From contig BFEA01000002.1 of NCBI GenBank assembly GCA_003427395.1, forward strand, positions 3,260,040-3,318,095: 58,056 bases of DNA, read 5' to 3'. The DNA comes from Chara braunii (lineage: Eukaryota > Plantae > Charophyceae). The position numbers and the translations under genes were made by a program. Below the pieces are notes generated by a model, which was not told where the DNA came from, ran no database searches, and saw nothing but the letters and a program-made list of their open reading frames with translations. How positions within the stretch are numbered: the first letter of the stretch is position 1; the number at the start of each line of letters is the position of its first letter. Below are positions 6,901 through 43,158 of this stretch, in pieces.

Positions 6901-7650
6901 CTTTGGATGTTTGTTGGGATTTTCGGGGGTGGGGGATCGAAAAAAGGATCACCTAAATCGGGTTGCAGTGTAGTAGTGAAGGCAACCGAATCTGAAGTAG
7001 AATCATTTGGACTAGAAGTAGATGGGGAAGTAGAAATACTAGAAGTAGGCACATTAGGCAAAATAGGATTTGTACTACCCGCAAAAGTAGAAGGCACATG
7101 AGTAGGACAAAAAAAAGCAACATACAATTGTTCTTCTGCCTTGCGCTTGCGCCACTTCTTGCAGAACTGCATTGCATTGAGATAAGTCACTTGGGATTCA
7201 CTCTGCGCCTTCATTTCCCAAAGCATCATGCACCACAAAGAGATCAACCTTCCACTCAGTCCATTTGCATGGGACCGTAACCAGCCCAACCCAAGGACTG
7301 CGTCGAAGGGGTACTTGTCAAGTACATAGAAGTTGAGTGCATGTGTAACTGCCTTATCTTTGTCAAAGGTAGTGCGCACACCACTGACCGCATGCGTAGA
7401 GGAGACAACTTCCTTGTTGCCTACCTGGGTTTGGCAAGGGGTCTGTAACTCCACTTGCCTCATTCCCAAGCCCACCTTGCGTATCCCATGTGGACACATG
7501 AAGTTAGTAGTTACGCCACATTCAACCAAGACACGGAGGTAGCGGTGGTTAATGAGAAAATTGAAGAAGATTAATTTTGTTGTTCCTTGAGCACGCCATT
7601 GTTTCATCTCAGCCCAATCCTTAAGGTGGTAGTTGAAGTTGACCTTTTCG
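3972..7650 (-). pseudogene. pol: Frameshifted Gypsy pol (protease, RT, RNase H, integrase, chromodomain)
   Basis: Protease-like [49 protein letters not shown]. RNase H FLGLASYYRKFV...TTDVSQYGIGAVLQQ...RELYAL. Integrase zinc-finger region LAHGRSGYFG...CQRIK and core SGRHPKVNG. Chromodomain-like RQYQVHF...HWISKKEL. Confidence 0.93.
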
Positions 7651-8209
7651 AACTCCTACCAAGGCTCATCATAGAGTACATGACATGCATCAGCCTTGGA
7701 ATCAAAAGATGAGGGGGCTTCAAGGGAAGATTGTTCATCTACGTGAGGTTCGGTCTCCCTTGCTGTAGAAAGTGTTGATGCCAACTCTACGCCCGATTCG
7801 GGGTTCCTTGCAACCTAAAACAACTTTGGACTTTATAGTTGGGTTTTAGGCAATGCAGGCAAACTCTCTTCTTGATCCTAGCCTTCCATTCATTTTCGCT
7901 GATCCTAAGGTTCAACCAAGGTTTGGTTGCAACATCCTCGAGCTTGGCTGGGAACTTGGCTCCCTTGGGAAGTGGGATATAGTTTTTTCATTGAGTTCCG
8001 GTTTGGCCTTTCACATTGGCGGACTTTCTAAAGGCATTAAGTTTCTCTGCATCATTGTTAATATCGCATTCATGGGCTGAAGATGAACAGCATGTATCAG
8101 ATTTCTGCTCTTGATTGTCATGGTGGGGTCATCTGCATAGGCCTCCTCATCAGCCTCCAACAGGTCATGCACAACAAAGCGGTTGCAGCCTCTAAATCAC
8201 TTGCTGCCT

Positions 8210-9200
8210 ATAGGCTTCTTGTTGCCTGCTGTAGAAACGAGGTCTGACTACATCCTGCATGAGGGAAAGTCAGTCCGTGTTTCCAATGAGATCTCTGCCT
8301 AGGCGATGTGTGTAAGTAGTGGGAACCGCACCTTTCACTACATCCATGCATGATTGTGCAGTCATTTCCAACTCGAGAGTGGCAAAAAGTCTGCTTACAT
8401 ACAATTGCAGGTTGTGCATGGTGCTCGACCATTTGTTGCGCTTGAGATTGTCAAGCTTGTTCCTTACTCTAACAGCAACATGTGGATCTTTGTATTGTTT
8501 AGTCGAGATCTCTTCCAGTGTGGCCATTTGGTCATGTCAATCTCAATCGTCCGACTTGCATAGCTTGTATTCCTAAGAAGCCCCGTACAGCGGGTTCGAC
8601 GTTGGTCCCTAAAATCAAGGACTGGCTCATCAATTGAGTTCCCAATACCTCAAAGTAGGCTCTCATGGAGCTGATCCAAGACTCCACGTCTTCCTTGCCG
8701 TCATGCTTAGACGATATTTGTACCGCCTTTTTGTCCACGCAGGGACTGCTATAATCAGCTCCAACAAATGTTGTGTTTGAACTCAAGGCTGCAACAGTTG
8801 CCGAAATCCCTGCGCTGTCACTTATTGCAGCGGCAGCGGGGTCTGCACCTAATGCAGGTCCCAATTGAACCACACTTAGAGACAAAGAGGTAGAGGCATG
8901 GAGAGGAGCAAAGACTGACTGGTTAGCAGCATTGGAGGCAGGAGGTAGCGGGAGAGGATGCGTCTGCAGTTGACTTACCTGGCCAAAATATTTGGATATA
9001 TGACCAGGCATTTCACTTTGCAGATGACAGTTTATGAGAGCACACACGTACTTGACCAGATCTTTCTTGACCTCAGTGTCAGCCAAGGAGGGGACTGTTT
9101 TAAAAACGGCCTCATTGTCCGCAACAACGGTTTTCCGCTTTTCCTTCTTTGCCTTCTCTTCCCTTGTCAGTCCTTGTCGTAGAGGACTCAGAACAATGGT
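8210..9200 (-). pseudogene. gag: Disrupted gag
   Basis: Lies upstream of pol. Fragments KHDGKEDVESWISSMRAYFEVLG and YKDPHVAVRVRNKLDNL resemble retrotransposon gag. Boundaries approximate. Confidence 0.75.
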
Positions 9201-10653
9201 TTGTCCTCATCGTTGGCCGCATCTAGTTGGCCCTTCAAGGCTACAGAGGCCTTTACCGTGGCCATGTTAGAACTACCGGGGTTCTCAGGCATTACGAAAA
9301 AAGACTCAGCAAGTCACTCAAGATGTGTGCTCTCTCTCTCCCTTCTCTCGCTCTTCATTTTATCCACGAGTCTCTACGGGCATCGAAATATGAACTCAAA
9401 AAAAGAAACAATTGAAAACCTCAAAGAAGAGAAGGTAGAACTCCTAGCCGGAGCGACATTACATTTGGACTAGAGAGCAACCATACAAAAAATAAAAATA
9501 AAAAAAATCAGATGAGAGATCTGATCCAGCATCTCAGCCTGATCAAACCGAATACGAGATCCCCTGGAGTCCAATCTGATCAGTTTCGTGGACGTACAAC
9601 AAATTCAGACGATGAGTAACGACATGCAAATGAAGAATTGAGTGGTGTATAAGGTGCGAGTCAAGCCACAGACCGTGCGGTAAAAGTATACAAAACATGT
9701 CAATAGAGATTCCCTCGGCAGCAAGTGCTCTAGCCAAAGAATAAAACTGCGTCCCGGACAGAAAGAGAATGATCTAACGTCAAACAGATTTGGGCCTAAG
9801 GGGCCCTTCTTGCTTGGGCCTGGTCCCACTAGGTACGCAGAAGGTCCCAAGTAGGTCATCACCAAGTCCCAACCAAGAAGAGTCCCATATGGACCTATTT
9901 CTGCCTCTACCGAACTGGGAAACGAATTTCAACTTTGGAAAGAACCTATAGTCTACATCCGTTCAGAGACAAAAAGACAATGCACTGCAGAAAGATATGG
10001 TGTCCAAAGCAAGATACCTCATCTCTTTATCCATCAGGTGAGAAAACAGTTTGAAAAAACATACTCACAATCAAGACCACAGACGAGTAGGAAAAGAAAC
10101 CCAGAGTAACCCCAACAGGCAATCAATGCCATGCACACGCATACATAGGTGCATGGCACTTTCCTGAGTGGCCCTAGAACTCACCCCCCTCTCATATGGT
10201 CCTCCTGACCCATTTAACACAACCCCTACACTAGTGTCCTCTTACTCCAGCACCAAAGTGCAACGCCGGATCCCCCGACGATGCTGAAGAACAAGGTAGC
10301 AACTTGCAGTCCGTAGATGCAGAATGGCTGGAACCTATAGTGCGCCTACTTGAGGGAAGCCCTAAGTCACAAAGTGTCTCCCTTGAATCAGATTCCAGGT
10401 GCGAGTGCCGCTCATTGTCGCCTCTCCCAATTGTCGCACCAAGTCATCTAGAAGTGTCTCGCCACTCCGATCTTACTCTCACACAACCTAGTTAGGTCAA
10501 GTGTCAACCCAACATGACCTAACTAGGTGGGGGCAGCTTCCCTTAACCACGCTGCCCCACTTTCCTCAACTTCCAGCCCTAACCTAAGTGGTAGCCCTCC
10601 ACTTAGGTTAGGGTTGGAGCGGCAAAGTCAACTCTCGCCAGCAAGTAGAATCC

Positions 10654-16056: not shown

Positions 16057-16412
16057 AGGGATAATTTGTAAAATGCCCCCGTAAGTTAGAGATCTGTGCC
16101 GAAATTCCGCTGAAAGGTGTGGGTAGAGCGGAATGCCCTTTTGGCGCCCATGTTTGTGTTATGCCCGTCAGGCCAGTGCGCAATTTTGCAATCTGGACCT
16201 AGCCATTTGGGCCTTGGCATTTTGCAATTGGGCCTTGGAAAAGCTGGCGAGTATCAGGGCATTTTGCCAATATTCCAGAGATGGGGGGTCCCCCGGGCCA
16301 GGTCACAAGAGTTTTTTTTTTTTTGTCATAGGGGCATTCCGCGCTATTCTTATCTTTTACGCTCATTTGGGCATACACCTGACCTTATGGGGGTATTTTC
16401 CAAATTATCCCT
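16057..16412. mobile_element. Mutator-like (MULE) MITE with 10-bp TSD
   Basis: TIR AGGGATAATTTGTAAAATGCCCCCGTAAG / CTTATGGGGGTATTTTCCAAATTATCCCT, with AATAATAATC on both sides (16047-16056 and 16413-16422). Confidence 0.85.
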
Positions 16413-16631
16413 AATAATAATCGCACCACTCCCGATCCACCTGCAGGCAGTGGCAGGGCCAGTGCGGCATGATTTTCTGCATAAGTATTCTTCCAGACAG
16501 TCTGACAGCGACCAGCACAGCGTGAGTCGAACTGCCAGCAGCAGAACTGTTTACACAGAAATCACATCGTGCCACATTGATCAATCCCCTTCCCCGCCCT
16601 CCCCGCAACCCACTCAAAATACACGCTCACA

Positions 16632-16668
<37 letters not shown>

Positions 16669-16671
16669 ACC

Positions 16672-16993
16672 CTGATGAGGCGGTGGAAGTCTAACGAAAC
16701 AGTTGGGTTGTGTATAGCGCACCTCCTGAGGAGTCTAGTTGTTTTAGCAGTTTTGACTGTATCTTTTGGAGTTACAGGATATTCTTTACCTTGGGATCAA
16801 ATTGGTTATTGGGCAGTAAAAATTGTGACTGGTGTACCGGAAGCAATTCCTATAGTAGGATCGTCATTAGTAGAATTGCTTCGTGGAAGCGTGAGTGTTG
16901 GACAATCAACTTCAGTTGGGTTGTGTATAGCGCACCTTGTGAGGAGTCTTTCTTCTTTGTTTTCCTATCGAGGTTTACGAAACAGTCCGTCAC
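16672..16993 (+). ncRNA. Scrambled remnants of the hammerhead-bearing repeat surrounding the petB insert
   Basis: CTGATGA-GGCGG-TGGAAGT-CTAAC-GAAA-CAGTT at 16672-16704, CCTC-CTGAGGA at 16722-16732, CTATCGAGG at 16965-16973 and GAAACAGTCCGTCAC at 16979-16993 each match parts of the copies at 29370 and 30233. Confidence 0.55.
16737..16912 (+). pseudogene. petB: Plastid-derived petB (cytochrome b6) fragment (NUPT)
   Basis: Translates to [58 protein letters not shown] with AT-rich plastid-like codons. Flanked by a 37-bp direct repeat (16700-16736 and 16913-16949, 2 mismatches). Confidence 0.96.
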
Positions 16994-17404
16994 CGACAAC
17001 CTTTCTTTGTGGAGTGGTGTTCAGCCATGGATTCGAGTTTGAAAGAAACAAGAAAAGAACTGTGAAAGAAAGAAGGGGGACTCCTCCCCCCCCCTCCCCC
17101 AAGAAAAAAAAAAAAAAAAAAGGCAGGGGGCAGAGGGAGGGGGTGGCTCCCACATGGATGAGTCAGACATGCTGGGTACCCTTTCACACGATTAGTTTTA
17201 TGGCTGCAGGTCCAAGTCGACAGCTGGCAAATACGTTGCAAAAAAAATACTGGCTCAAGTTTTTTTTTTCTCTTTTTTTTTTAGCTCTCTTCTCCTGGCT
17301 GTAGTTGCAAGCAGGGAGGATCAGAAAAAAGAAAAAAGAAAAAAAAAGGAGGATCTAATATCTTTCCTTTATGGCAGTCTGCCCACCGTGGAATCGGATC
17401 AAGA

Positions 17405-17897
17405 AGGATCTAATATCTTTCTTTTATGCCGCGGCCCGGCCACCCTGGAATCCGATCAACCAGACATAGGGTGCAGACAAAAAAGAAAAGGAAAAAAAAA
17501 AAAAAGAGGAGGATCTAATATTATGTACTATGTAGTCCATTATATAGGGGCGCCCTCCACCACAGAACCTTCCACACGTATCTGCGCTGCTTCGTAGGCC
17601 ACATACTTTTGGACTGACCCAACATTTTGAGTGTATCGGGACCACAGCATCGGATCAAGGAGGATCTAATATCTTTCCTTTATGGCGGCCCGCCCACCCT
17701 GGAATCGGATCAACCGGACATAGGGTGCAGACAAGAAAAAAAAAAAAAAAAAAAAAAAAAGGGAGGATCTAATATTATGGTGTCCATTAGATAGGGCCGC
17801 CCTCCACCACAGAACCTTCCACAGGTATCTGTGCTGCTTCGTAGGCCACATACTTTTGGACTGACCCAATATTTTGAGTGTATCGGGACCACAGCAG
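17405..17897. repeat. ~250-bp tandem duplication with an internal GGAGGATCTAATAT sub-repeat
   Basis: 17405-17650 is repeated at about 17660-17897. Confidence 0.8.
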
Positions 17898-18626
17898 GCC
17901 CAGATAAATTTGGAGTCTTGTGTAGTGGAAGGACGGCCGTATCCATGTGGATCATGATGACGTGGAACGGCCTGTTTATACTCTGTGGGTTTTTTTTTTT
18001 TTTTTTTTTTGGCGGTACTCTGTGGGGTTATGGATGTGCGTGCAAATGACAAGGGAAAAAATACCTTAAAAAAAGACAAAGCACAAAGTTCAGCAAACTA
18101 AAGAGGGATTTTGTCCAACAGGCCTAGCTCAGGTGGTACACTTACGAACTGTTGAAAATTGAAATGCAGATCTGAGTTCGAATTCCAGTGGTGGATTTTT
18201 TGCACACGTTTCGAAAGACAAAGGATGAGCTCAAAAGGGGTTTGCACAGTGCTGAGTCTGCTGACGATGCAAAACCTAAACCGCTACACCATGACTGTCT
18301 GCACATGCCGGTGTGGGGGGGGGGGGGGGGGGGGTTGGTTGGGAGCGTAATCTGTAAGGGTTATCTTTCCACTGCCTTCTGTCTGGTCTGGCTGTGATGT
18401 GGTTTAGCCGCACAGAAGATTGCTCAGGGTCCTGGGCTGGATGCTCTTGGGGGATATAAGAGAGCAAGGCATTCTTTTCTTTTTCTTTATGTTTTTCTTG
18501 AAGGTCGTATGATCATCGAATTAACCAGCCCCGGGTGATTCAGAGTTATTTCATTCTTTGTTAATAAATTACAAAAAAATCCGTTCTTAAAATTACAAAA
18601 AAATCCGTTCTTAAAATTACAACAAC

Positions 18627-18720
18627 AAAAAAAAGTTTTCATTCATCTGATTCCATCAGGATTGAACTCCGGTCTGTTTATCAGCAGTTCATTGGCGTAC
18701 CATTCAGCGTCACAGGCTGG
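18627..18720 (-). ncRNA. tRNA-derived (SINE-head-like) Pol III unit
   Basis: Minus strand has an A-box-like GACGCTGAATGG, a B-box-like GGAGTTCAATCC and a T8 run ~25 nt downstream. No convincing cloverleaf. Confidence 0.5.
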
Positions 18721-18790
18721 GTCAGGGGCGACGTTTTACCTCCAGTCTCACCTTTGTTGTTGAGTTAACGGTCCAATCTGGGGGTAGAAC

Positions 18791-18854
18791 CCAGCTCATG
18801 TGGCTGGATGGTACACCCATACAACTGTCGATAAACAGATCAGGAGTTCGAACC
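18791..18854 (+). ncRNA. tRNA-derived (SINE-head-like) element, inverted partner of 18627-18720
   Basis: A-box-like TGGCTGGATGG and B-box-like GGAGTTCGAACC; shares the GATAAACAGA linker with the minus-strand copy. Confidence 0.5.
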
Positions 18855-21301
18855 GTGCTAAACCAGACCAGACAACACAGTGGGGGTTCAAACTACCACC
18901 TGATACGAGGCACCCAACCATTGCTAAAAGCTATGCCTGGCGCCCGACCATTTTGTGAAGACATTTGCAGCCTTCTGGCTGTCATCTCCGTGGTTGGCCA
19001 TTCCACTTAGTACCACGTGGCTTCTGGCTTGGCCATGAGCCCCGCCCCACGTCATGCAGATAGTTGACGAGGCAGAGACTGGGAGCTGGTCTATTGGTGG
19101 GAGGAGTGGGAGTATAATCACCGCAACGACGTGGTCACGTGCGGCGTACAAGGGAGCAACAACAACGATTTCCAGCTACCAAGCAGCTATGGCAATCTTG
19201 GACTGCATGAATGGCGCCCTCCATTAACAGCAGGGTATCTTCTTTCGTATATGAAGCGGTGGTCCTGCTTTGAAGGCAGCTGGAGGGTTGGTCGGCAGCC
19301 AAGCGGCAGCAAAGAAACTATGTCTGCTTCACAGACTGCTTCATCGACGAGGAGGTTGGTGAACAGCTGGCTGGATGCAACGGAGGAGGCATCGGACACA
19401 ATCCTGTTTCGATACATGATCACAACTCCACATGGTCATAGGTAACTGCAGGTGTAAGGTAGTGCTGGACAATGTCGGATGGGCATAGGATATTGTGGGG
19501 GGGACTGATGTGTTTTGTTAGAAATGATGTCTGCAGAGGAATGACGGTGGCGGGTAGGGATGCAGGGTGGAAGATGGGGATGGTTGTCCGCTCTGTGTTC
19601 CTGAGGAAGGCGTAAGCGGCGAGACGCAGGACGAGGAGGGGTTAGATGCCTGTCCTATCCCGCCTGCCGTTCAGCTTCTTCCGTCCTTTCCTCAGCTCCC
19701 TTCCTCTTTCCCATCCTCTGTGCCACTGATTGGTCGTTGTGCTAATTTTGGTAGTGTGCCAGATGGTAGCTACTAGAATAAAGACTATGTTGAAACTGAC
19801 TCCTCTATGGTGCTTAAAAGAGGGTTACACCAGAGGGAGTCGGCCATTGCTAGAATGAAGAACACGAGTTCGAACGCACAGGTAAGGACCACGTTCACCT
19901 ACATTCATCATTATTATTATTATTTTCGTTTTTTTTTTACAATATGTTAGTAAGAAGTGCACTCTACAGATTGGTGTAAAGTATGGTTAAAATGACCCTT
20001 TGGTTTTCTTATAAATGAGGGTGAAAATTGGGGGGTCGGTTAACCTTCTCTCATTCATCAGTGATCAGGGGTGGCTTGGAGAACCACCCTTTGACGGGGG
20101 AGTAAACACCACCATGCTAATCATGACAGTGGGCTGCAAGGTGGGGATAGGATTCATAGCGGTCGGACGGGTTACCTTGTCTTTGGCTTTCTGGTCCGTC
20201 TCGATTCAAGTTACACATGACGGAGGTTAGAAAGCAGGACACTTCATTTAACCACCAGGGTGGACGGGAAGAGAGGGTGGTGGGGCACGGGGCAGGGAGT
20301 AGGCGAGGGTGAGGGTTGTTAAATAGGAGGGCGAGCCTTGTTAAACAGGGGTCATGGGGTGGCTGAGAGAAGGGGTTGGTTTGTAGGCGAGGGCGAGGCT
20401 TGTTAAACAGGAGGCCCTGTGTCATGTACAATGAAGGCATTGTTCGCAGGAGGCCTGTTAAACAGGAGGGCCAGTATATATGGTCCCCACCTCGGGAGAG
20501 GCGGTTAACGGAGACCCAAAAAACTGATTTCAGCAATGAAAACATTTTACCCCATTAACCACTGGTGCACGTCGGGCGGGGGTTCACACAACAACAAACA
20601 ACAAGTGAGGTGGAGTAGTGGGTGGCCTTGAAGATTTATCACCTTGCCCCCTGCATAGAACTCCGACAAAGATAGGAGGCGACACCTTGTCAATCGATGG
20701 GGGTTGTCGGCTGCTGTTATCCTCGTTGATCCTATCCTGCAGGGAGAGGGACGCAGTTTGCTACGAGGGCATTTTCTCCTTACAGATTTATTGAACGCAA
20801 TTCACTGTTCCCGGATCAAGCGGTTGGGTGAGTTCCAATTGGCTTACAAAACAACAACAACAACAACAAGATGGGTGAAGGTATGGATGGTCTCGAAGAC
20901 TGTCTCCACCCTTCAGAAGTTTTTTCAACTAAATGCAGTGAATCAGTAGGTACTACTAGGTAATGTATGGCCGAGGTACTGGTGATTTAACCACTCCATT
21001 GGAATGAAGTAGCTGTGAAAGGTACTGATGGTGGACGCGGGGAGACAAAGGCAGCGATCCTCGTCCACTTCGTCAGCAGACCTATATTGGAATTTGGAAC
21101 TGTTATCTTGATGGGGCGCTGGCTCCGGTTGCCAGCAGCGGTGGCTCCCCACCAATTGACAGAGGCACAGGAACATCAGACTGGATTCCTCAGACAGGCA
21201 GGGTGTTAATTCTACTCTCTACTCTTAATATCATGGTCTCATGTTATGATTTGATTGCCGTGTATTTAGCCATCGCACTTCCCCCGGAGTATGAGCTTTA
21301 A

Positions 21302-21702
21302 ACCACCAGTACCTTTCCCAGCTATCAAGTCCGAGCCTCCCACTACCGGTATGCCAAGCCTTGCAGAGGCTAGTGCTACCGGTAGCAGGAAAGTCATCCT
21401 TTTCCATTTAAAAAAAAAAGGGGGAAATTTGTCTGGCACCCCTGTAATTTTCATTATTTAAACTATTTTGCGTCGCGCCCCTCCCACGGCCGATTTACCC
21501 TGTCGCTCCCCTCTGACCACGATTCAAATTTCCCATAAAACCTCGGTGTCGTTTGGGCCTGAAATATTTTTGTTATGCCCCTACCGGTACCCGTTCCAAA
21601 TTGGCAGTTCGCGCCTAACCAGCACCAAAAAATCCATATGCCCCTACCGGTAGGGTGCATCTTTTCAGCACGTCTATGACTACGCGCATGGCAACCACTT
21701 CN

Positions 21703-21794
<92 letters not shown>

Positions 21795-21982
21795 GAATCT
21801 TCCCCCACGCAGTTCGTCTTTCTTTGTTTTTCATTAGTTTTCTTCGTTCTTTCCTATTTTTTCCGTTTTTCAGGAAAATTTTTTGTTTCCCGGTCCTTGG
21901 GTAGCGACCGCGTTCCCTGGCGTGACCTTCCATGTTTAACTGCCACGGAATATATTTTCAAGCGGGAAAAGGTTCTGGTGGT
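21302..21982. mobile_element. 681-bp non-autonomous TTAA-flanked element, same TIR family as 13768-13916
   Basis: TTAA|ACCACCAGTACCTTTCCC ... GGGAAAAGGTTCTGGTGGT|TTAA; contains a (CT)n run. Confidence 0.75.
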
Positions 21983-24170
21983 TTAAATCACAAGTCCTTT
22001 TCCCAGCCATTTTTCTAAGAGGCACTGTGCATGCAGCTGTGTTGGGTGGGATGTACCGCTGGAATCCCATCCATCTAGGCAGAACGGGTCTCATGCAAGA
22101 CCCGCTTTGCCTGGATGGATTTCCAACGAAACAGCACCCGGGACATCCCTCCCGATGCGGCGGCGGGTCCTAGAAAAATAGATGGAAAATGCCCTCTGGT
22201 GGTTTAACAGGGGCTTGCCTTACCATGCTGACATGGCAGGTGGCACCAGGCAAGGAAAAAAACATTTTGCGCCAATGTTGGTTCACTCTTGTTTGGCTTG
22301 CATCAGCAATCCGGGTTGGCATAGAGATGCTTGGAGGGAGTAGTGGTTTAAACTGAAAAATAAAAAACCCGGCGGTCATCGGAGGCCGTGAGAGGCAGTA
22401 GCGGTTGCATGCCTGCCTTCCACTATGCCTGCAGAGCTGCCGCACAGGAAGACATCCCACTTGCAGTTTACTGATAAGGGATACTGTCTGTGCATAATGA
22501 ACACCTTTGAGTCTGCGCCATTATTTCTTTTATCTGGAAGTTCGCAGAGTTGGAAACAAACATAGGAAACACATCGTTGGTGTGGACAATCTAGAGATAG
22601 GTTTCGTAGGGATCTCTAAGCTCACATTTAGTTAAAAGCAAGTCGACTTTGTAGATGTCCATTGCTCCACAGGCTGTTGCGAAACATCTGCCAACGCAGC
22701 ACCGCCAAAAGGGGTGAGGTCCACTTGCACGATTTACGAGATACGGCCGATAGATAACGACGAGCACTGGTCGATATCCGTTCATCTGTGTCAGTGGGAC
22801 TTTGTCTGGGCAGTGAAGTCCCCACAAAATCCTCTCTGATGCTGTTATGTGAAGTTCCAAATGGCCGATATAATTGTGGAAAAAGAAGGAAAAGTGTAAT
22901 CATGATCTGTAGTCTAAACCTTTTAAGGGCATATTCGCAAAAAGGGTTTTCGGGAACATATGCGAAGGTATTCATACCTAGATTCAGTTAAGAAAAGCAT
23001 CGAGTGAGAAGGGTCCTCACGCATGGGGGCCGCCGCACGACTTGCAAAACAAAAACAAAATGTGGGTGCATCTTTCCACAAAATGTGGCTATATACATCC
23101 GTTTAAGCACCGGATGTATATTGCCACCTTCTTCGGGAAGATGAAACGGAACCAACCTCTTTCGTTTTGTGAGTAGTGTGGTCAGGCCCTATCTGTCACC
23201 GACAGCGGATACTTTTCTGGTAATTACGGATTGAAACGGAACCGGGTTGCAGCCTTCCTTCTTCTGCTTCTTCTGCTTCTTCTGCTTCTTCTTCTACTAC
23301 TTTTAGGCTATAGCCTTCCAGCATGGAAAGGGGCCTTGGCAGATAAAAACAAAGTTCTTTTTCTGCAGGTGGGTTTTGAATGATATGATTATCACTGGTC
23401 TTTCAGCATGGTCAAGTTCAAAAAAAGAAAAGAAAAGGAAAAAAGAAAAGCAGTTACTTCTCAAGAGAGATTCGGAGGAAAAAAAAAGAGAGAAAGAAAG
23501 AAAAAAAAAGAGAGAGAACAACATTTTTCTGCAGGTGAGTTTTGGATGATATGAGATTATCACAGGTCTTTCAGCCAAGTGGGCTTCTGCTCCCCTATGC
23601 CTGATTGGCTGGAAAAGGAGGAGCACGGTGGGGGGAAAGGGAAGGAGGAGGCTAGAACTCCTCTACCCGGAAAAAGAAGGGAAAAAAGGAAAAGATCAGG
23701 GTGGGACCATACCTCACGTGGTAGAAGAATATAAGGGTGTACCGACTAGTACGATCTTCCCTACAACACAACACAATCTGATCATTCATGTTTGTTTACA
23801 AGCAATGTTTCCGTCTTATACAGTCATCACGAGGGTGTGTCATAATGGGGGTGAGTTGTGGTCAGGCAAAGACTGTAGGCCCTTCGACCAGGCTCCTGCA
23901 CATGGCTTCACACCTGGGGCGAGGCCAACCGGATTTCTCCTTTTTGGTTGTCGATGGCGAGAATGAATCCCGCAAGGTGGCACACAGGTCGTTGATGGCG
24001 AGAAACGACCGTCTTCCCCTTTGAACACAACGGACCCTTATTTTGCCTGTACCTGACAAGAAATATAGCTTGTATACATTCATTATCAGGGCGCGTTATG
24101 TTCCAGGGAAAGCGGTAGGAATTCCATTACAGTGGACATAACTCTGTGAGCATGCCGGTGAGTACTGTCT

Positions 24171-24223
<53 letters not shown>

Positions 24224-24527
24224 NNNNNNNNNNNNNNNNNNNNNNNNNNNNNNNNNNNNNNNNNNNNNNNNNNNNNNNNNNNNNNNNNNNNNNNNNNNNN
24301 NNNNNNNNNNNNNNNNNNNNNNNNNNNNNNNNNNNNNNNNNNNNNNNNNNNNNNNNNNNNNNNNNNNNNNNNNNNNNNNNNNNNNNNNNNNNNNNNNNNN
24401 NNNNNNNNNNNNNNNNNNNNNNNNNNNNNNNNNNNNNNNNNNNNNNNNNNNNNNNNNNNNNNNNNNNNNNNNNNNNNNNNNNNNNNNNNNNNNNNNNNNN
24501 NNNNNNNNNNNNNNNNNNNNNNNNNNN
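24224..24527. other. Assembly gap next to (CT)n
   Basis: Run of N. Confidence 0.99.
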
Positions 24528-25109
24528 AGGCTGGTGAGGATCTTCTTCTTTCTTTTTTGTTTGTCTTTCTTCTCTTTTTCTTTGCGTTTGATTTCCTCTT
24601 AGAGGTGAACCCCACAGGTTTGCAGCGAAAGGCTGGAAACCGACCGGCCTTTCCAGGATTTAGCTGTCGGGGGAAACAACCAATTTTTTGAAAGAAGACC
24701 CCACCCCCCCGCGCAATGAGGCGGGGCCGAAGGGTTTGCTGTCCGCATTAGGAAGACTTTCCTTTTGTGTCATTGCAAATTCCATTTAAGGATTGTACCT
24801 GGACAATAGCGGGCGGCGCACAGTGCCGCTTGGTACCGGGTCCGCAGCCCAGTTTTGACAAGTGGCCCATCTTTTGTTCTTTTTGTAATTTGGGCCCACA
24901 GCACATTGTCCCACAAATGTTCCGACGCGAAATGACCAGATCCGGTTTCCCGAAGGGTTCGTCTGCTCACCCCATTTGCCACCACTGCAGCATCTCCGCC
25001 GCCATCTCTCTCCATCTTCTTCTTTGTGTGTCCTTTGTTGTCAATCACTTCTGCAGTCTCAGGGACAGTGGCGGGCATGGATTGCTTGCAAGCGGGCGGT
25101 CCGCGTGGG

Positions 25110-26340
25110 AAGATTGGATGGCCATCAATGACATGGTCTTCCTCGTGCAACCGCTGCAAATGAGGAATGTCGCTTCCATGACGGTGTTGCAGGCGGCAGT
25201 AGCATTGCCCCTGCAAGTGCCAGGTGTTGGTGACAACCTCGCCTTCATAGGGGGATGTATGATTCACAGCCACATTATGCAGTGTGCAGCCTTGAAGGTT
25301 GCCCAGCAGCAAGCATGAAGGAAAGGTAGATTGTGGGTATTGGAATGCAGCGGAGGCGTGTGGTTGGACCTGCAGATAACGTGCTCCAGAGATTTTGTTC
25401 TTCCATGTCGGCTCGTCCTCGAAATCCTTGAGCGGATAGAACTGCACATTCAACGGCATGACACGAACTGGAGGGGGCCATTAGCAGCCTCTCCTAAGTT
25501 CGCATGCGAGCTGGGACATTGGGCAATGGGCACATATTCCAGACAGATGCTTGGCGTGTGGTTGGCGAGTGCCCAGCAGAGCAACACTGACGTCTTGGAG
25601 ACACTTATCAAGGGATAAGGTCACCTCATCATATTCCGTTGGGGGTGTTGTCTATAGGACACCCTAGATGCTTTCTAGAGGAAAAGATTTCCAAGGTGTG
25701 TGGGCATCATGGACTGCACCCACATATACATAGAGAAGCCAAAGAGCAAGAGGGCGGAGTGCTGATACGACCGCACCGGTGGCCACTCCACTGCCGCGCA
25801 GGTTGTGTGTGACCATGATGGCAGGATCTTGGAAGTGTTTGTGGGGTGCCCTGGGTCCGTTCACGATGCCCGTGTGCTACTGATGTCACCCATGTACAAG
25901 GGTGTGCAAGAGGGTAGGGGCATCTTCCATAGTGGTGCGTGACGGCGGAGAAGTCGGGTACTACCTTTTGGGCGATGCTGGGTACCCACAACTGCTATGG
26001 ATAGTGACCCTGGTTAGGGGGAGCACGAGGACGCCACGTTCTATATTGCTTTAAGGTCTATCATCGAGCGATGCTTTGATCGATTGAAAGGATTGTAGTG
26101 CAATTTCATTCGGTGTCAGAACTGCAACATAAAGACCTTGTGCGAGGAGTTCATGTCATGTGCATTCTATACAACATCATGATTGATCATCGATGCGAAT
26201 GTCGAAATCGATCCCATTTTGTTGACAACTGACTCTGAGAGTGGCGAAGAAGACAACGACATTCCTCGTCCTCCTCGTCAACGGCGATGTCGAGCAGGCG
26301 AGATCAGGTGGCACAACGGGGAGGAGGGCTAGGGATGGGA
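25110..26340 (+). pseudogene. Decayed PIF/Harbinger DDE transposase (HARBI1-like nuclease domain)
   Basis: Manual translation across stops and frameshifts gives FPRCVGIMDCTHIYIEKP (~25690-25741), QVVCDHDGRILEVFVGCPGSVHDARVL, YLLGDAGYP and IIERCFDRLKG. These are the characteristic Harbinger motifs in the right order. Boundaries approximate. Confidence 0.88.
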
Positions 26341-26536
26341 GGAAGGCTGAGGATGGGAGGAGGTTTCACTGGTACACTGCACAAATGCTAGCAAAGTCGT
26401 CAGGGATAGGCTGAATTCGCCATGTTCAACACCACGAGAGGTTGCATGGTCCACTGCCTGCAAACCCTTAGGGTGCATGATGCACTGCCTGCAAATCCTT
26501 GGGGTGCATGATGCGTAAAGAAACGGCAAAGCAAAG

Positions 26537-26638
26537 GTCGATTTCGTAGTTATGGACTAGTACATGTCTCCATGGTGCACTTGTGACGGAGCTATCGAAC
26601 CATAATGACTGTGCTGCACTCATCTTCATCACCCTTCT

Positions 26639-26722
<84 letters not shown>

Positions 26723-26723
26723 N

Positions 26724-26794
<71 letters not shown>

Positions 26795-27266
26795 CGCTCG
26801 CTCGCTCGCTCTCTCTATATATATACATATGGTATAATATATGGTATATACATATGGTATAATATATGATGATATATATGTATAGGGTTCAACCTCTTGA
26901 TGGGCCTGTGAAACTCCGATGAAATATTTCGTCACAGCCCTTCGTTTGTTGTCTGATTCTCCCGCTCTGCCTACAGTTTACTGGCCAACTATGTTGGACG
27001 ATATGTATCCCTCTTTGTCTACTGTTCACCCAGCAATTCCGTTTCACAATATATATATATATATCCCTCTCTGCCTACGGTTTACCGAGCAGTTCTGTTT
27101 GACGATATATATATATATATATATTATACCATATGTATATATATACAGAGAGAGAGAGAGAAGAAGAAGGGTGATGAAGATGAGTGCAACACAGTCATTA
27201 TGGTTCGACAGCTCCGTCACAAGTGCACCATGGAGACATGTACCAGTCCATAACTACGAAATCGAC
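26537..27266. repeat. Long inverted repeat enclosing a decayed hammerhead-repeat copy
   Basis: 26537-~26650 is the reverse complement of ~27150-27266, and the match extends through the CT/AG and TA-rich runs. No TSD seen. Confidence 0.85.
26884..26932 (+). ncRNA. Truncated, heavily decayed type III hammerhead copy
   Basis: AGG-GTTCAA-CCTC-TTGATGG-GCCTG-TGAAACT-CCGAT-GAAA-TATTTCGT aligns to the copies at 29370 and 30233. Confidence 0.5.
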
Positions 27267-27269
27267 GTG

Positions 27270-28604
27270 CGGGCCTACTGAATGGTTTCGTTTTTTTACT
27301 ATGGATATGGTAGAATGTTTGTTTTGTGAATCTTGTCTGCTTTGCTACTGTTATTGGGCATCCTGGTTGATTGTTTCCCGTTGTTCGGCCTTTTGAGCAC
27401 GGGGCGGTGCTTGTGTGTGGGAATCGTCATCTGGGATTGTCTTCTCTTTCTTTTTGGTTGTCACACTGGAATCGGAGTCCTTCTTTTTGCTTTCTTTGCA
27501 GACAAGAATGTTTTGATATCCTGGTTGGTCTTGTCCCGTCGTTTGGGCTGTGAGTTGGGGTGGTGCTTGCGTGTGGGACTTGTCATCTGGGATTTGTTTT
27601 GTTGCCCCCTGTTCTGTATTATTTGGCTGTTCCCTTCCTCTTTTCTTTGCCTCTTTGCCTTCTGGTTGTGTGCAAGTGGGTCGATATGACACACGGGGGT
27701 GGGGGCAGCCGCCGCTCAACCTACTACATCCACGTGGGCGGCCTTGTATGCAAGAGGTTCTGAACAGGGGGAGTTGTAAGGAAGAAAAGAAATGAACTGA
27801 TATTTTTTTTGTTTTCCTTTGTTTTTTTCGCTTTTGCGCTCTGATATTTATGTGATGATATATACTCCGACGTTGCTAGCTCTCTGCTTTTGCTGATGAT
27901 GCGGCGAGCGTCGGGCCTGTACTAGCAGGCTTTGTCTTTTCTTATGGAAGAGAATATTTTTTAACATATTTTCTTTAATCTTCCCTATTGATTGGGGTGT
28001 TGCGTTTTACGGGCCTATTGAATGGTTCCGTTTTTTCACTATGGATATGGTAGAATGTTTGTTTTGTGAATCTTGTCTACTTTGCTTCTGTTATTGGGCA
28101 TCCTGGTTGATTGTTTCCCGTTGTTCGGCCTTCTGAGCGCGGGGCGGTGCTTGTATGTGGGAATCGTCATCCGGGATTGTCTTCTCTTTCTTTTTGGTTG
28201 TCACACTGGGATCGGAGCCCTTCTTTTTGCTTTCTTTGCTGACAAGAATGTTTTGATATCATGGTTGGTCTTGTCTCGTCGTTTGGCATGTGAGTTGGGG
28301 CGGTGCTTGCATGTGGGACTTGTCATCTGGGATTTGTTTTGTTGCCCCTTGTTCTGTATTGTTTGGTTGTTCCCTTCCTCTTTTCTTTGCCTCTTTGCCT
28401 TCTGGCTGTGTGCAAGTGGGTCGATATGACGCACGGGGGTGGGGGCAGCTGTCGCTCAACCTACATCCACGTGGGCGGCCTTGTACGCAAGAGGTTTTGA
28501 ACAAGGGGAGTTGTAAGGAAGAAGATAAGAAATGAACTGATATCTTTTTTGTTTTCCTTTGTTTTTTTCGCTTTTGCGCTTGGATATTTATGTGATGATA
28601 TATA
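27270..28604. repeat. ~595-bp direct duplication (27270-27863 and 28010-28604)
   Basis: Two copies with scattered substitutions, both ending in TA runs. The divergence argues for a real duplication rather than an assembly error. Confidence 0.88.
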
Positions 28605-28894
28605 TACATATATATATATACGTACCTTTGTTTCATGGGTGTTTTGCTGTTTTTTGACGAGTTGTGAATCGAAAGTCTATAGAGTTTTCCATTGAGTGAT
28701 AGTCAGCGTGGATTTTTGTCACAGGTACCATGAGGGAAGTGGTTGGTGCCCACGTCAAGGTATGAATTGCCGGGCAGTCGTTGGCGCTATGGTTTACATG
28801 GCAGCTCTGTTTGAACAACCCCTTGTTTGTTGTCCCCTTATCCCTCTTTGTCGACGGTTCACCAGACTATTTTGTTTGACGATATATACAATAT

Positions 28895-28932
28895 CTGTCT
28901 CTTATACACATCTAGATGTGTATAAGAGACAG
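28895..28932. other. Nextera mate-pair junction adapter (library artefact)
   Basis: CTGTCTCTTATACACATCT+AGATGTGTATAAGAGACAG, two inverted Tn5 mosaic ends. Flanked by an identical 161-bp duplication (28734-28894 and 28933-29093). Confidence 0.99.
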
Positions 28933-29107
28933 GGGAAGTGGTTGGTGCCCACGTCAAGGTATGAATTGCCGGGCAGTCGTTGGCGCTATGGTTTACATGG
29001 CAGCTCTGTTTGAACAACCCCTTGTTTGTTGTCCCCTTATCCCTCTTTGTCGACGGTTCACCAGACTATTTTGTTTGACGATATATACAATATTATACAT
29101 ATATATG

Positions 29108-29470
29108 GAGTGTTTTTTTTTTTTGTGATAGACCTTTCTTTGTTTTGTAAGTGTTTTGCTGGCTTCTGACGGGATGTGAACCGAAACCTTCTGGAGTTTT
29201 CCATCTAGTGTGGGTGAATGATAGTCTGCTTTGTTTTTCATCACGGGTACCTTAAGGATAGTGGTTGGTGCCCACGTCAGGGTATTGGTTGTCGGGCAGT
29301 CGTTGATGCTTAACCACGATCGGGGTTAGGGTGGATTATCACTTAAAATGTAATCAATTAGGGGATTCTGCAAACTATTGAGGGTTCAGCCTCTTGACGA
29401 GTTGGTGAAACTTTGATGAAACAGTTTGTCACAGATCCTCGTTACCAGGCAGTTCTCTTTGACGATATAT
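29108..29470 (+). mobile_element. Hammerhead-bearing repeat unit (retrozyme or Penelope pLTR-like)
   Basis: Homologous to 29971-30360 and in part to 28625-28894 and 26884-27110; ends TTGACGATATAT. Confidence 0.6.
29370..29429 (+). ncRNA. Degenerate type III hammerhead ribozyme
   Basis: GCAAACTAT-T-GAGG[GTTCAG]CCTC-TTGACGA-GTTGG[TGAAACT]TTGAT-GAAA-CAGTTTGT. All three stems and the core order are present, but the core carries C>T and G>A changes. Confidence 0.7.
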
Positions 29471-29909
29471 ACCACGACTTCAATAGCACCCCGCTACAGT
29501 TTTCGTCGATCACTTCGAGAAACGATAGTCAAAGGAAAATTTGAATGGGGAGCAACTAATATTCCACCGAAACCTGGGAGGAACGAAAACCGTCCACGGG
29601 AAGGCTTCCAGGACAAGATCGTACAAGAAGTTTTTAGAATGATCTTAGAACCTCTTTATGAACACCACTTTTCCACTTATTAACGCGGCTTCAAACCGGG
29701 ACGTAGTGCTCACACGCCCCTTAATGTTTTAATGGGTACCTTTTATGGTTAACAATGGTATATTGAAGGATCCCTGGAGGCCCTGGAGCTGTAAATCATT
29801 GAACTCTCTATAAGATCATCCAACGAATAATCCGAGATAAAAGGATTCTGAAACTAATCCGCTCTGGACTACAAGCTTTTTTTCATATGCCACACGGAGA
29901 GATGGAGCG
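29471..29909 (+). pseudogene. Group II intron reverse transcriptase/maturase fragment, probably organellar
   Basis: Translates to PKPGRNENRP..FQDKIVQEVFRMILEPLYEHHFSTY*RGFKPGRSAHT..WYIEG..VNH..IIQRIIRDKRILKLIRSGLQA, the N-terminal RT subdomains of group II intron-encoded proteins, with stops and a frameshift. Confidence 0.9.
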
Positions 29910-29970
29910 TTTGTGGTTGGGGTTTTCACTACGCGGCCATGTTGTGCCGCTAGTGCCATTAACGTGTTTA

Positions 29971-30360
29971 GAGTGTATTTTTTGGCTGTGATAGACTTTT
30001 CTTTGTTTCATGGATGTGTTGTTGGCTTCTGATGGGGTGTGAACTAACGGTTTGTAGAGTTTTTAATTTGGTGTGGGTGAGTGATGGTCTGCATTGATTT
30101 TAGTCAAAGGCACCTTGAGGGCAGTGGTTGGCGCCCACCTTAGGATATCAGTTCCTGGGCAGTCATTGATGCCTAACCACAGTCGAGGTTAAGGTGGATA
30201 AACACTTATAGTGTAATCAATTATCGGATTCTGCAGACTGTTAAGGGTTCAGCCTCCTGATGAGTTGGTGACCTCCAATGGAACAGTTTGTCACAACCCC
30301 TCGTTTGTTGTCCTCTTTTCCCTCTGTGCCGACGGTTTACCTAGACAGTTATGTTTGACT
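29971..30360 (+). mobile_element. Hammerhead-bearing repeat unit, second near-complete copy
   Basis: Direct repeat of 29108-29470, followed by TA and CT microsatellites. Confidence 0.6.
30233..30291 (+). ncRNA. Degenerate type III hammerhead ribozyme
   Basis: GCAGACTGT-T-AAGG[GTTCAG]CCTC-CTGATGA-GTTGG[TGACCT]CCAAT-GGAA-CAGTTTGT. CUGAUGA is intact and stem III has 9 bp, but GAAA has become GGAA and GUC has become GUU. Confidence 0.72.
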
Positions 30361-30380
30361 ACAGGTATATGTATATAAAT

Positions 30381-43050: not shown

Positions 43051-43158
43051 AAAAAAAAAAGAAGGAAATCTTATTTCGATTTATAGGAGGAACCCTTATG
43101 CAGGGGCTATGCTAATCTTTTCTGTACCATTCCATCTTTAACAGATGTCCCGAAGGAC
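43051..43158 (-). ncRNA. U6: U6 snRNA-like sequence (diverged variant or pseudogene) with T10 terminator
   Basis: Minus strand reads GTCCTTCGGGACATCTGTTAAAGATGGAATGGTACAGAAAAGATTAGCATAGCCCCTGCATAAGG...ATAAATCGA...T10, collinear with plant U6. ACAGAGA has become ACAGAAA and the 3' third is diverged. Confidence 0.85.

Follow-up and report, generated by a model that had tools for sequence, protein, structure and literature searches.

To our knowledge, the transfer of organelle sequences to the nucleus is held to be almost wholly DNA-mediated. In L1 chimeric retrocopies (U6-L1 and similar chimeras formed by template switching), the foreign part lies 5' of a 5'-truncated element, with a single target-site duplication (TSD) and a poly(A) end. 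Plant retrozymes are reportedly LTR-type non-autonomous elements with type III hammerheads. In Chara braunii, Chlamys hammerhead elements, which are Penelope-like elements (PLEs) with an N-terminal endonuclease (EN), have already been published together with non-autonomous derivatives (Craig et al. 2021, PMC8557442). A published target of theirs is (CA)n, and for PLEs both multicopy head-to-tail insertion and trans retrotransposition of host genes have been reported, as well as unusual 30–40-bp 'tail' extensions ascribed to the resolution of an intermediate by the endonuclease (PMC8557442). At the DNA level, 828 polymorphic NORG insertions are known from rice, with a TSD of >5 bp in 110 and of >20 bp in 36, all read as DNA-level events; Oryza NORG insertions cluster and are later fragmented by TEs (PMC12129026).

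We analysed a stretch of Chara braunii DNA of 58,056 nucleotides (the window; assembly GCA_003427395.1, contig BFEA01000002.1), in which a piece of plastid petB and a piece of a mitochondrial maturase ORF lie beside hammerhead-type units. Somewhat probably, both pieces (the first a NUPT, the second a NUMT) entered the nucleus as ordinary insertions of organelle DNA, in repeat-rich, microsatellite-rich DNA of the Chara braunii type.

Hammerhead units and similar described elements

The hammerhead family near 29 kb includes the following units.

26850 to 27111, + strand: unit P, 5'-truncated (self-comparison, nhmmer)
28616 to 29093, + strand: unit 0, slightly 5'-truncated, hammerhead region deleted, inflated by an assembly artefact (self-comparison, nhmmer)
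29104 to 29471, + strand: unit A, full-length (~365 nt), mutated hammerhead (nhmmer, 383 bits)
29967 to 30366, + strand: unit B, full-length, best hammerhead of the window (nhmmer, 431 bits; Rfam)

All five family units lie head-to-tail on one strand, the hammerhead being ~90 nt from the unit 3' end, and about 2.6% of the window matches their nhmmer profile. A TA-rich tract precedes unit P, which begins where the hammerhead is predicted to cleave or within a few nt of there; such a start speaks for an RNA intermediate in this family. Behind unit P stand two more copies of the 3' end, each 48–56 nt long. The hammerhead of unit A reads TTGACGAG...GAAAC at about 29390–29427, and the unit ends with GACGATATATA. 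Unit B, 78% identical to unit A, has helix III and the CUGAUGAG box, with GGAAC replacing CGAAAC. According to the preliminary description, both organelle inserts lie in hammerhead-ribozyme repeats. Cores of hammerhead type are indeed present, but they are decayed copies: in the Rfam search, only 30235–30289 in unit B scored (Hammerhead_3, 25.9 bits against a gathering score of 48.5), no stretch of the window reached the gathering threshold of RF00008 (type III), and unit A, unit P and the core at 16672–16700 had no match.

Like the Chlamys elements of C. braunii, the units carry their hammerhead close to the 3' end, are often 5'-truncated (units P and 0, and element E described below) and are inserted in several copies head-to-tail (P, 0, A and B). 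The flanks of the units and of element E are (TA)n or (CA)n, and Chlamys elements, which are high-copy in C. braunii, likewise insert at (CA)n, (C)n and (TA)n tracts. Unlike Chlamys elements, the units have decayed hammerheads and no RT or EN ORF, and no PLE ORF was found within the window; the likeness is one of structure, a link to a Chlamys master element being putative. A metagenome search for further copies of either hammerhead family gave 0 matches. By these features, the flanking units look like decayed copies of Chara's hammerhead, non-LTR, microsatellite-targeting retroelements of the Chlamys/Penelope-like type.

A likeness to plant retrozymes is also visible, as the arrangement A-NUMT-B has a non-coding centre between two units of ~360 nt whose hammerheads resemble type III. 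However, the units of the window also stand in tandem without a central region, end in (TA)n and lack TG..CA, and A and B are only 78% identical. The 499-nt spacer that A and B flank is part of the longer stack P, 0, A, B, and no TSD, which in retrozymes would measure 4 bp, is discernible in its TA-rich flanks. A tRNA-Met primer-binding site (PBS) near 29472 was not matched at ≤2 mismatches, the three matches elsewhere in the window being at chance level. A classical LTR retrozyme was therefore rejected on the missing PBS, the tandem units and the (TA)n ends.

The petB insert and its host element

The petB piece interrupts another element, here called element E.

16633 to 16666, no strand: (CA)n microsatellite, directly left of element E (read from sequence)
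16668 to 16699, + strand: element E, 5'-truncated, starting within the hammerhead at CCCTGATGAG (core search, alignment, nhmmer)
16700 to 16736, + strand: left copy (Y) of a 37-nt direct repeat, containing CTGAGGA (self-comparison)
16737 to 16912, + strand: NUPT, plastid petB exon 2 (PDB, Pfam, plastid-depth contigs)
16913 to 16949, + strand: right copy (Y') of the 37-nt direct repeat (self-comparison)
16950 to 17050, + strand: remainder of element E, up to a purine-rich low-complexity tract with C and A runs (pairwise alignment)

The insert of 176 nt encodes amino acids 122–179 of cytochrome b6 in an intact reading frame. It matches the cytochrome b6 structure 6rqf (E 9e-29) and PF00033 (E 1.4e-22), and shows 0/176 differences from read contigs of the same organism at plastid depth (~1,000–8,000x), which extend past it both ways into plastid flanks that are still petB coding sequence. 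The coding-strand petB fragment first reported at this place is thus confirmed. NUPTs of petB are common, since the read contigs hold at least five other petB junctions at nuclear depth, with unrelated flanks; a search for NUPT paralogues through short petB-like proteins gave matches from other species only. Several nuclear-depth contigs stop at 16911/16912, two of them with possibly related flanks. These ends were not counted as a fixed RNA 3' end because they are largely an effect of aligning to the insert of the window.

Element E has lost its 5' half. Its hammerhead core, CTGATGAG-N15-CGAAAC at 16672–16700, is intact and is the sole exact match in the window (0.04 expected; at least one match in 4/100 shuffles). 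Helix I and the 5' strand of helix III are missing, helix II is poorly paired or unpaired, and the fold has a z of -0.65. The core aligns at 28/36 positions to those of units A, B and P, and it was this 36-nt core alone that the profile of the 29-kb family recognised in element E (nhmmer, E 0.012). Positions 16950–17050, which the profile missed, show weak similarity to the 3' region of that family (pairwise z about 2.7–3.5). Neither element E nor the petB flanks have a further copy within the window, and in the read contigs the hammerhead of element E does not recur exactly at high copy number.

The surroundings of petB differ from their first description as follows. The insert had been placed within a hammerhead repeat, and a decayed core does adjoin it, but its flanks are not a repeat within the window. 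It was said to start 4 nt after a hammerhead core; CTGAGGA at 16726–16732 does end 4 nt before petB but belongs to the duplicated 37-mer and is no ribozyme (as a second core it was rejected, the next CGAAAC being 31 nt away with no helix II between). Finally, the repeats on both sides are real, but the supposed pieces of the same motif are the 37-nt direct repeat at 16700–16736 and 16913–16949, with 35/37 positions identical (94.6%) and two adjacent differences (CC to TG in Y').

In the assembly, both petB joints are blunt, free of filler and of microhomology, and flanked by this 37-nt duplication. Such a clean duplication with blunt joints might arise if a PLE GIY-YIG or LINE endonuclease nicked an old element at sites 37 nt apart and organelle RNA (via RT) or DNA were joined there in trans, the hammerhead element being in that case a target only. 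The 30–40-bp tail extensions of PLEs, with the role ascribed to their endonuclease (PMC8557442), would suit this event. Yet the 3' end of petB carries neither a poly(A) nor a microsatellite tail, long TSDs also form where no retroelement enzyme is at work (PMC12129026), and the NUMT locus would be left unexplained; we consider insertion in trans improbable. By analogy with the rice TSDs of >20 bp (36/828, PMC12129026), the duplication appears compatible with DNA-mediated insertion.

Element E looks older than the petB piece because the latter is identical to plastid DNA at 176/176 positions while Y and Y' differ at 2/37 and the element is low-copy with a decayed hammerhead. The contrast between 0/176 and 2/37, along with the decayed hammerhead, argues against an origin of petB and its host element from one cDNA. 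If, on the other hand, Y and Y' are a true TSD that arose when petB was inserted, it would be mildly unexpected for them to differ at two positions while petB has no difference at all (P about 0.01–0.09), which is a point against an ordinary insertion of organelle DNA.

The joints stand in the assembly, and per-run contigs from three DNA runs cover neither of them, nor 16670–16736 or 16913–17132. This would be expected if the petB insert, or the NUMT junctions, were chimeric reads or gap-closing errors of a short-read and mate-pair assembly. However, the same contigs show neither the insert-bearing nor the empty form of element E, and their absence probably reflects tip-clipping in the graph beside plastid k-mers at about 8,000x rather than true absence. 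A de Bruijn misjoin at petB is excluded because the joints have no k-mer in common with plastid DNA, and it is unlikely that two independent chimeras would both lead back to one locus and overlap there by 37 nt.

The mitochondrial insert and the assembly around it

The second insert lies between units A and B, downstream of two assembly features.

24224 to 24527, no strand: assembly gap between the petB and NUMT loci, left edge in (CT)n
28895 to 28932, no strand: Nextera mate-pair junction adapter, palindromic, 38 nt (sequence match)
29472 to 29512, no strand: 41 nt between unit A and the NUMT, without similarity to mitochondrial contig L003 or the rest of the window
29513 to 29906, + strand: NUMT, internal part of a Chara mitochondrial group II intron RT/maturase ORF (tblastn, phmmer, nucleotide alignment)
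29907 to 29970, no strand: 64 nt after the NUMT, possibly filler or a further, more decayed stretch of the ORF (protein and nucleotide alignment)

The fragment was identified only through tblastn, which returned 745 plasmid records annotated as group II RT/maturase, and exhaustive phmmer; Pfam and PDB searches on its stop-free pieces found no RT match, and a word-indexed protein search gave no candidates. Among library proteins it is best matched by the mitochondrial 'reverse transcriptase and intron maturase' of Chara vulgaris (72–74% amino acid identity, E 1e-53), of which it covers residues 342 to about 476. Against the Chara-type mitochondrial contig L003, which carries atp1 and the intron ORF, 358/407 nt are identical (88%). 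With three indels, three in-frame stops and one frameshift (near 29780), it is a decayed mitochondrial sequence in a nuclear context, and its 12% divergence with stops means that it does not stem from contaminating organelle reads. Of the two inserts, the petB piece is the young one and the NUMT the old one.

The preliminary description was right that a sense fragment of a group II intron RT lies between hammerhead units, but not that it starts right after unit A: the 41 nt at 29472–29512 intervene, so the NUMT is not flush with that unit. A NUMT filling the whole A-B spacer was likewise rejected: the protein HSP reaches 29955, but the nucleotide alignment to L003 spans only 29513–29906, and the residual score equals the 95th percentile of shuffles. 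In sequence, the 41 and 64 nt that bound the NUMT look like filler or patchwork.

An adapter artefact had been noted ~540 bp from the maturase insert, and the Nextera adapter does lie 539 nt upstream of 29471. It is flanked by two perfect 161-nt copies (28734–28894 and 28933–29093, 100% identity), so that about 199 nt of unit 0 are spurious. Such an untrimmed adapter with a false duplication in the same repeat stack, like the 120-nt inverted duplication (98%) nearby, lends some weight to an artefactual origin of the insert junctions, which we nonetheless consider very improbable. The gap at 24224–24527 bears only on the statement that the inserts are 13 kb apart and on their mutual strand, not on the orientation of each insert relative to its own ribozyme.

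Origin of the organelle inserts

As reported at the outset, both inserts share the orientation of the adjoining hammerhead units, petB, the maturase piece and all units being on the + strand; with two events, the probability of such agreement by chance is 1 in 4. Within the window, these two were the only protein-coding organelle pieces of ≥50 aa that were found, and for both to lie in or between family units the nominal probability is about 1e-3 to 1e-4, a post hoc figure for two events before look-elsewhere correction. These adjacency statistics favour an association, and with it a capture of RNA in which the element RT would jump to organelle RNA during target-primed reverse transcription and then back to element RNA, yielding one cDNA. 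As in L1 chimeras, foreign and retroelement parts have one orientation at both inserts, as one cDNA would give. The one-strand, head-to-tail stack, including the serial 3'-end copies, accords with cDNA synthesis on several templates, a process that could take up foreign RNA, the start of unit P points to an RNA intermediate, and both multicopy head-to-tail insertion and trans-mobilisation of host genes have been described for PLEs (PMC8557442). An out-and-back jump between two element RNAs would, moreover, explain that the copies of the 37-nt repeat already differ.

Other features fit RNA capture less well. Unlike the foreign part of L1 chimeras, petB sits inside its element with a duplicated part of that element on either side, and stretches of 41 and 64 nt keep the NUMT apart from the unit termini; direct joints to an element terminus and equal ages of the two parts were thus not found. 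The petB joints lack microhomology, for the jump back the RT would need an internal landing site or an element RNA truncated at its 3' end, and the 0% divergence of petB contrasts with its decayed, low-copy host. The spliced exon junction by which RNA passage might have been recognised is spanned by neither insert, petB lying wholly within exon 2 and the NUMT wholly within the intron ORF, and no other RNA-only feature was found in the two. In sum, the anatomy permits RT template switching, but no feature demands it. RNA capture at these loci appears unlikely, and quite unlikely too is the wider proposition that the RT copying Chara Chlamys-type elements occasionally jumps to leaked organelle RNA and builds fragments into head-to-tail arrays.

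For the preferred origin as two ordinary organelle-DNA insertions, we infer a DNA route and the following order of events. Organelle DNA would have been captured at a break or stalled fork. At petB, the blunt joints and the 37-bp target duplication may stem from a staggered break, or from template switching during replication, within an old copy of the element, while the NUMT may have entered a stack of (TA)n-targeting elements with filler added at each of its ends. That the inserts lie near hammerheads would then probably reflect the abundance of the elements and their break-prone, microsatellite- and hairpin-rich surroundings rather than reverse transcription of organelle RNA. Like the Oryza NORGs, the inserts are short internal gene fragments with blunt joints or filler and, at petB, one of the occasional TSDs of >20 bp; unlike what that survey reports, both events here fall in one retroelement family and are co-oriented (PMC12129026). 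Indeed, the small share of the window covered by the family (~2.6%), the sense orientation of both inserts and the one-strand, head-to-tail arrangement of all units speak against the DNA route.

To conclude, the present evidence does not reach a demonstration of organelle RNA capture. If true, capture by a retroelement would add a second, RNA route of organelle-to-nucleus transfer beside the usual DNA route and would connect endosymbiotic gene transfer with the template jumping of Penelope-like elements. Besides, this work describes two NORGs of a streptophyte alga that are clean examples, one of them bearing an unusually long flanking duplication of 37 bp, together with the precise anatomy of a hammerhead retroelement stack, and both loci are useful as test loci for genome-wide analysis.

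The petB insert and its probable host element

The plastid-derived petB piece encodes cytochrome b6 residues 122–179 in an intact frame, and its limits in the preliminary description, 16737 and 16912, were borne out by the read data. When per-run contigs from three DNA runs were compared with 16300–17400, exactly this stretch was covered, at ~1,000–8,000x and with 0 differences, and the high-depth contigs ran on into plastid petB at both of its ends and not into the window flanks. Since these plastid-depth contigs match without differences, the piece is identical to the organism's plastid gene between 16737 and 16912; the exact piece is present in many runs of one organism. The insert is bracketed by a 37-nt direct repeat (16700–16736 and 16913–16949; 35/37 identical, the two differences being adjacent), and in the assembly its joints are blunt at both ends, with neither filler nor microhomology seen there (microhomology being assessed against plastid flanks from contig loose ends). 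The CTGAGGA beside petB, previously read as a hammerhead core, belongs to this direct repeat, which explains why pieces of the same motif had been reported on both sides of petB.

The hammerhead core proper, CTGATGAG-N15-CGAAAC, lies upstream of petB at 16672–16700, directly after a (CA)n tract, and is the sole exact match in the window (0.04 expected by chance). It has neither the 5' strand of helix III nor helix I, its helix II pairing is poor, and it was not reported by an Rfam search. It matches the cores of the hammerhead units near 29 kb at 28/36 aligned positions (nhmmer E 0.012). The remaining petB flanks have no second copy in the window and resemble that family only weakly. On these sequence features, the petB flanks are read as belonging to a decayed copy (element E), truncated at its 5' end, of a related hammerhead element, into the middle of which petB would have been inserted. 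A stop-free frame of 396 codons (16114–17301, + strand), which is also the petB frame, spans the (CA)n tract, element E and petB; it has no family match except petB and is probably a low-complexity effect. Just to the right of the locus, 17346–17900 holds ~250-nt tandem units (91–94% identical), each with A-rich runs and a AGGATCTAATAT motif.

In the three runs, 16670–16736 and 16913–17132 were not covered by any contig, whether carrying petB or representing the empty form, and unique DNA near the locus was covered ~6–9x. Assembly of the ~8,000x plastid path probably clipped the short element arms, treating them as low-coverage tips. No k-mer is common to the petB joints and the plastid, which makes a graph misjoin unlikely. 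Nuclear-depth contigs from runs X1–X3 and X24 also carry parts of the petB stretch, with left junctions at 16768, 16769, 16813 and 16822 and, in two or three of the contigs, a right junction at 16911. They show the variants C at 16823 and C at 16888, also dominant among the few oligo-dT RNA reads, which could reflect transcription of NUPT paralogues or a difference between strains.

The maturase fragment and the surrounding hammerhead units

Pieces of the maturase frame gave no Pfam or PDB match. A tblastn search of 49 residues against plasmids returned 745 records (best E 1e-3), and among the matches listed the annotated features were reverse transcriptases (RTs) or group II intron RT/maturases; two such bacterial RTs align to 29555–29782 (E 3e-14 in the window). 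The best match to the fragment, found by exhaustive phmmer, is a 760-aa mitochondrial protein with 73% identity, the 'putative reverse transcriptase and intron maturase' of Chara vulgaris (domains RVT_1 and Intron_maturas2), which aligns to 29513–29782 and then, in another frame, to 29779–29955 (E 1e-53, 72–74% identity). As nucleotide reference, we used metagenome contig L003 (1–4911, 4.9 kb; JGI 3300075934), which carries an ATP synthase alpha gene with ATP-synt_ab domains, probably mitochondrial atp1, together with a 774-aa group II intron RT/maturase that clusters with the Chara vulgaris ORF at 90% identity. Over 29513–29906, 358/407 nt are identical to L003, with three indels, and the alignment breaks off abruptly at either end; this stretch is thus a decayed NUMT of ~394 nt, sense on the + strand. 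Its homologous part contains three in-frame stops and one frameshift. Of the limits proposed earlier, the end at 29909 was right and the start at 29471 should move 41 nt rightward. Neither the 41 nt preceding the NUMT nor the 64 nt following it match L003 or the rest of the window beyond chance.

Members of the hammerhead family were located with a profile built from the copies, and were found only at the following positions.

Hammerhead family members located by the family profile
26850–27111, + strand, unit P
28616–29093, + strand, unit 0, ribozyme region lost
29104–29465, + strand, unit A, full-length
29967–30366, + strand, unit B, full-length
16671–16706, + strand, core of element E

Units A and B (~365–400 nt each) are 78% identical to each other, the start of unit P coincides with the predicted cleavage site or lies no more than a few nt from it, and two more copies of the 3' end (48–56 nt) come after unit P. 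The units terminate in GACGATATATA and (TA)n, are arranged head-to-tail and have no tRNA-Met PBS; LTR-type retrozymes were rejected on these grounds, and the sequence anatomy is that of non-LTR, microsatellite-targeting, head-to-tail elements. Between 27267 and 28604, two copies of a ~600-nt unit (94% identical, ~740 nt apart, with an internal 156-nt repeat) both end in GATGATATATA and run in the same direction as the hammerhead units; they probably represent a further non-autonomous element of this stack that targets (TA)n.

The window is eukaryotic and rich in repeats, with many microsatellites. Five N-runs occur, of which three are gaps of 148–304 nt; the gap at 24224–24527 bears only on the distance and mutual strand of the petB and NUMT loci. 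Assembly around units P to B is poor, with an adapter artefact in unit 0 and an inverted repeat around unit P.

Other features of the window
~4273–9206, − strand, pol region of a Ty3/gypsy-type LTR retrotransposon (Pfam RVT_1, RT_RNaseH, RT_RNaseH_2, Integrase_H2C2, RVP_2)
26537–26656 and 27147–27266, arms of a 120-nt inverted repeat (98%), unit P at centre
28895–28932, untrimmed Nextera mate-pair junction adapter (38 nt) inside unit 0, between two 100% identical 161-nt copies
43058–43158, − strand, U6 snRNA gene that exceeds the gathering score (63.9 bits) and has a T-run after it

Within 28734–29093, ~199 nt of unit 0 are spurious and stem from assembly. The inverted repeat (26537–27266) surrounds unit P together with (CT)n/(GA)n and TA-rich DNA and has more inverted arms at 26801–26879 and 27107–27160; it is a genuine palindrome or else a product of fold-back misassembly.

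RNA or DNA route of insertion

In C. braunii, Chlamys Penelope-like elements (PLEs) are present in very many copies, and one type there carries a canonical 3' hammerhead (Craig et al. 2021, PMC8557442). Targets of these elements are (CA)n and (C)n tracts, 5' truncation is frequent, and copies occur as partial tandems and as multicopy insertions arranged head-to-tail; a 30–40-bp 'tail' is common on PLEs, which sometimes retrotranspose host genes in trans (PMC8557442).

The observation that organelle inserts lie beside hammerhead repeats is largely real, although coordinates needed correcting and the ribozymes are decayed. No further protein-coding organelle piece of at least 50 aa was found in the window (392 stop-free segments searched), and a tRNA search found none, so both known inserts fall in a family whose ~1.5 kb make up 2.6% of the window. 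This placement favours the proposal that a retroelement RT built organelle RNA into element cDNA, as do the shared orientation of both inserts with the units and the fact that the family stacks head-to-tail and clearly moves via RNA. If the RT had jumped out from one element RNA and back onto another, the flanking repeat would also have had copies that were unlike from the outset. However, the NUMT is padded by its 41 and 64 nt of other sequence and is not joined to unit termini, and an RNA-only mark is absent from both inserts. Moreover, petB has no substitution, in contrast to its decayed host element with repeat copies differing at 2/37, which argues against element and insert coming from one cDNA; P is ~0.01–0.09 if the 37-nt repeat and the insert arose together from one template. 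In the reads, element E is no exact repeat of high copy number. The read contigs contain five or more further petB junctions at nuclear depth with unrelated flanks, which is against RNA capture or neutral, and the same holds for target-site duplications >20 bp, also present in 36/828 rice NORG insertions (nuclear insertions of organelle DNA) that are read as DNA-level events (PMC12129026). RNA capture is therefore possible but rather improbable, and no feature discriminates in its favour. As a minor alternative, nicks by a retroelement endonuclease may have set the 37-bp stagger at petB.

The most likely explanation for both inserts, which we hold with roughly even confidence, is ordinary NORG insertion: organelle DNA would have entered, at the DNA level, break-prone retroelement and microsatellite DNA.
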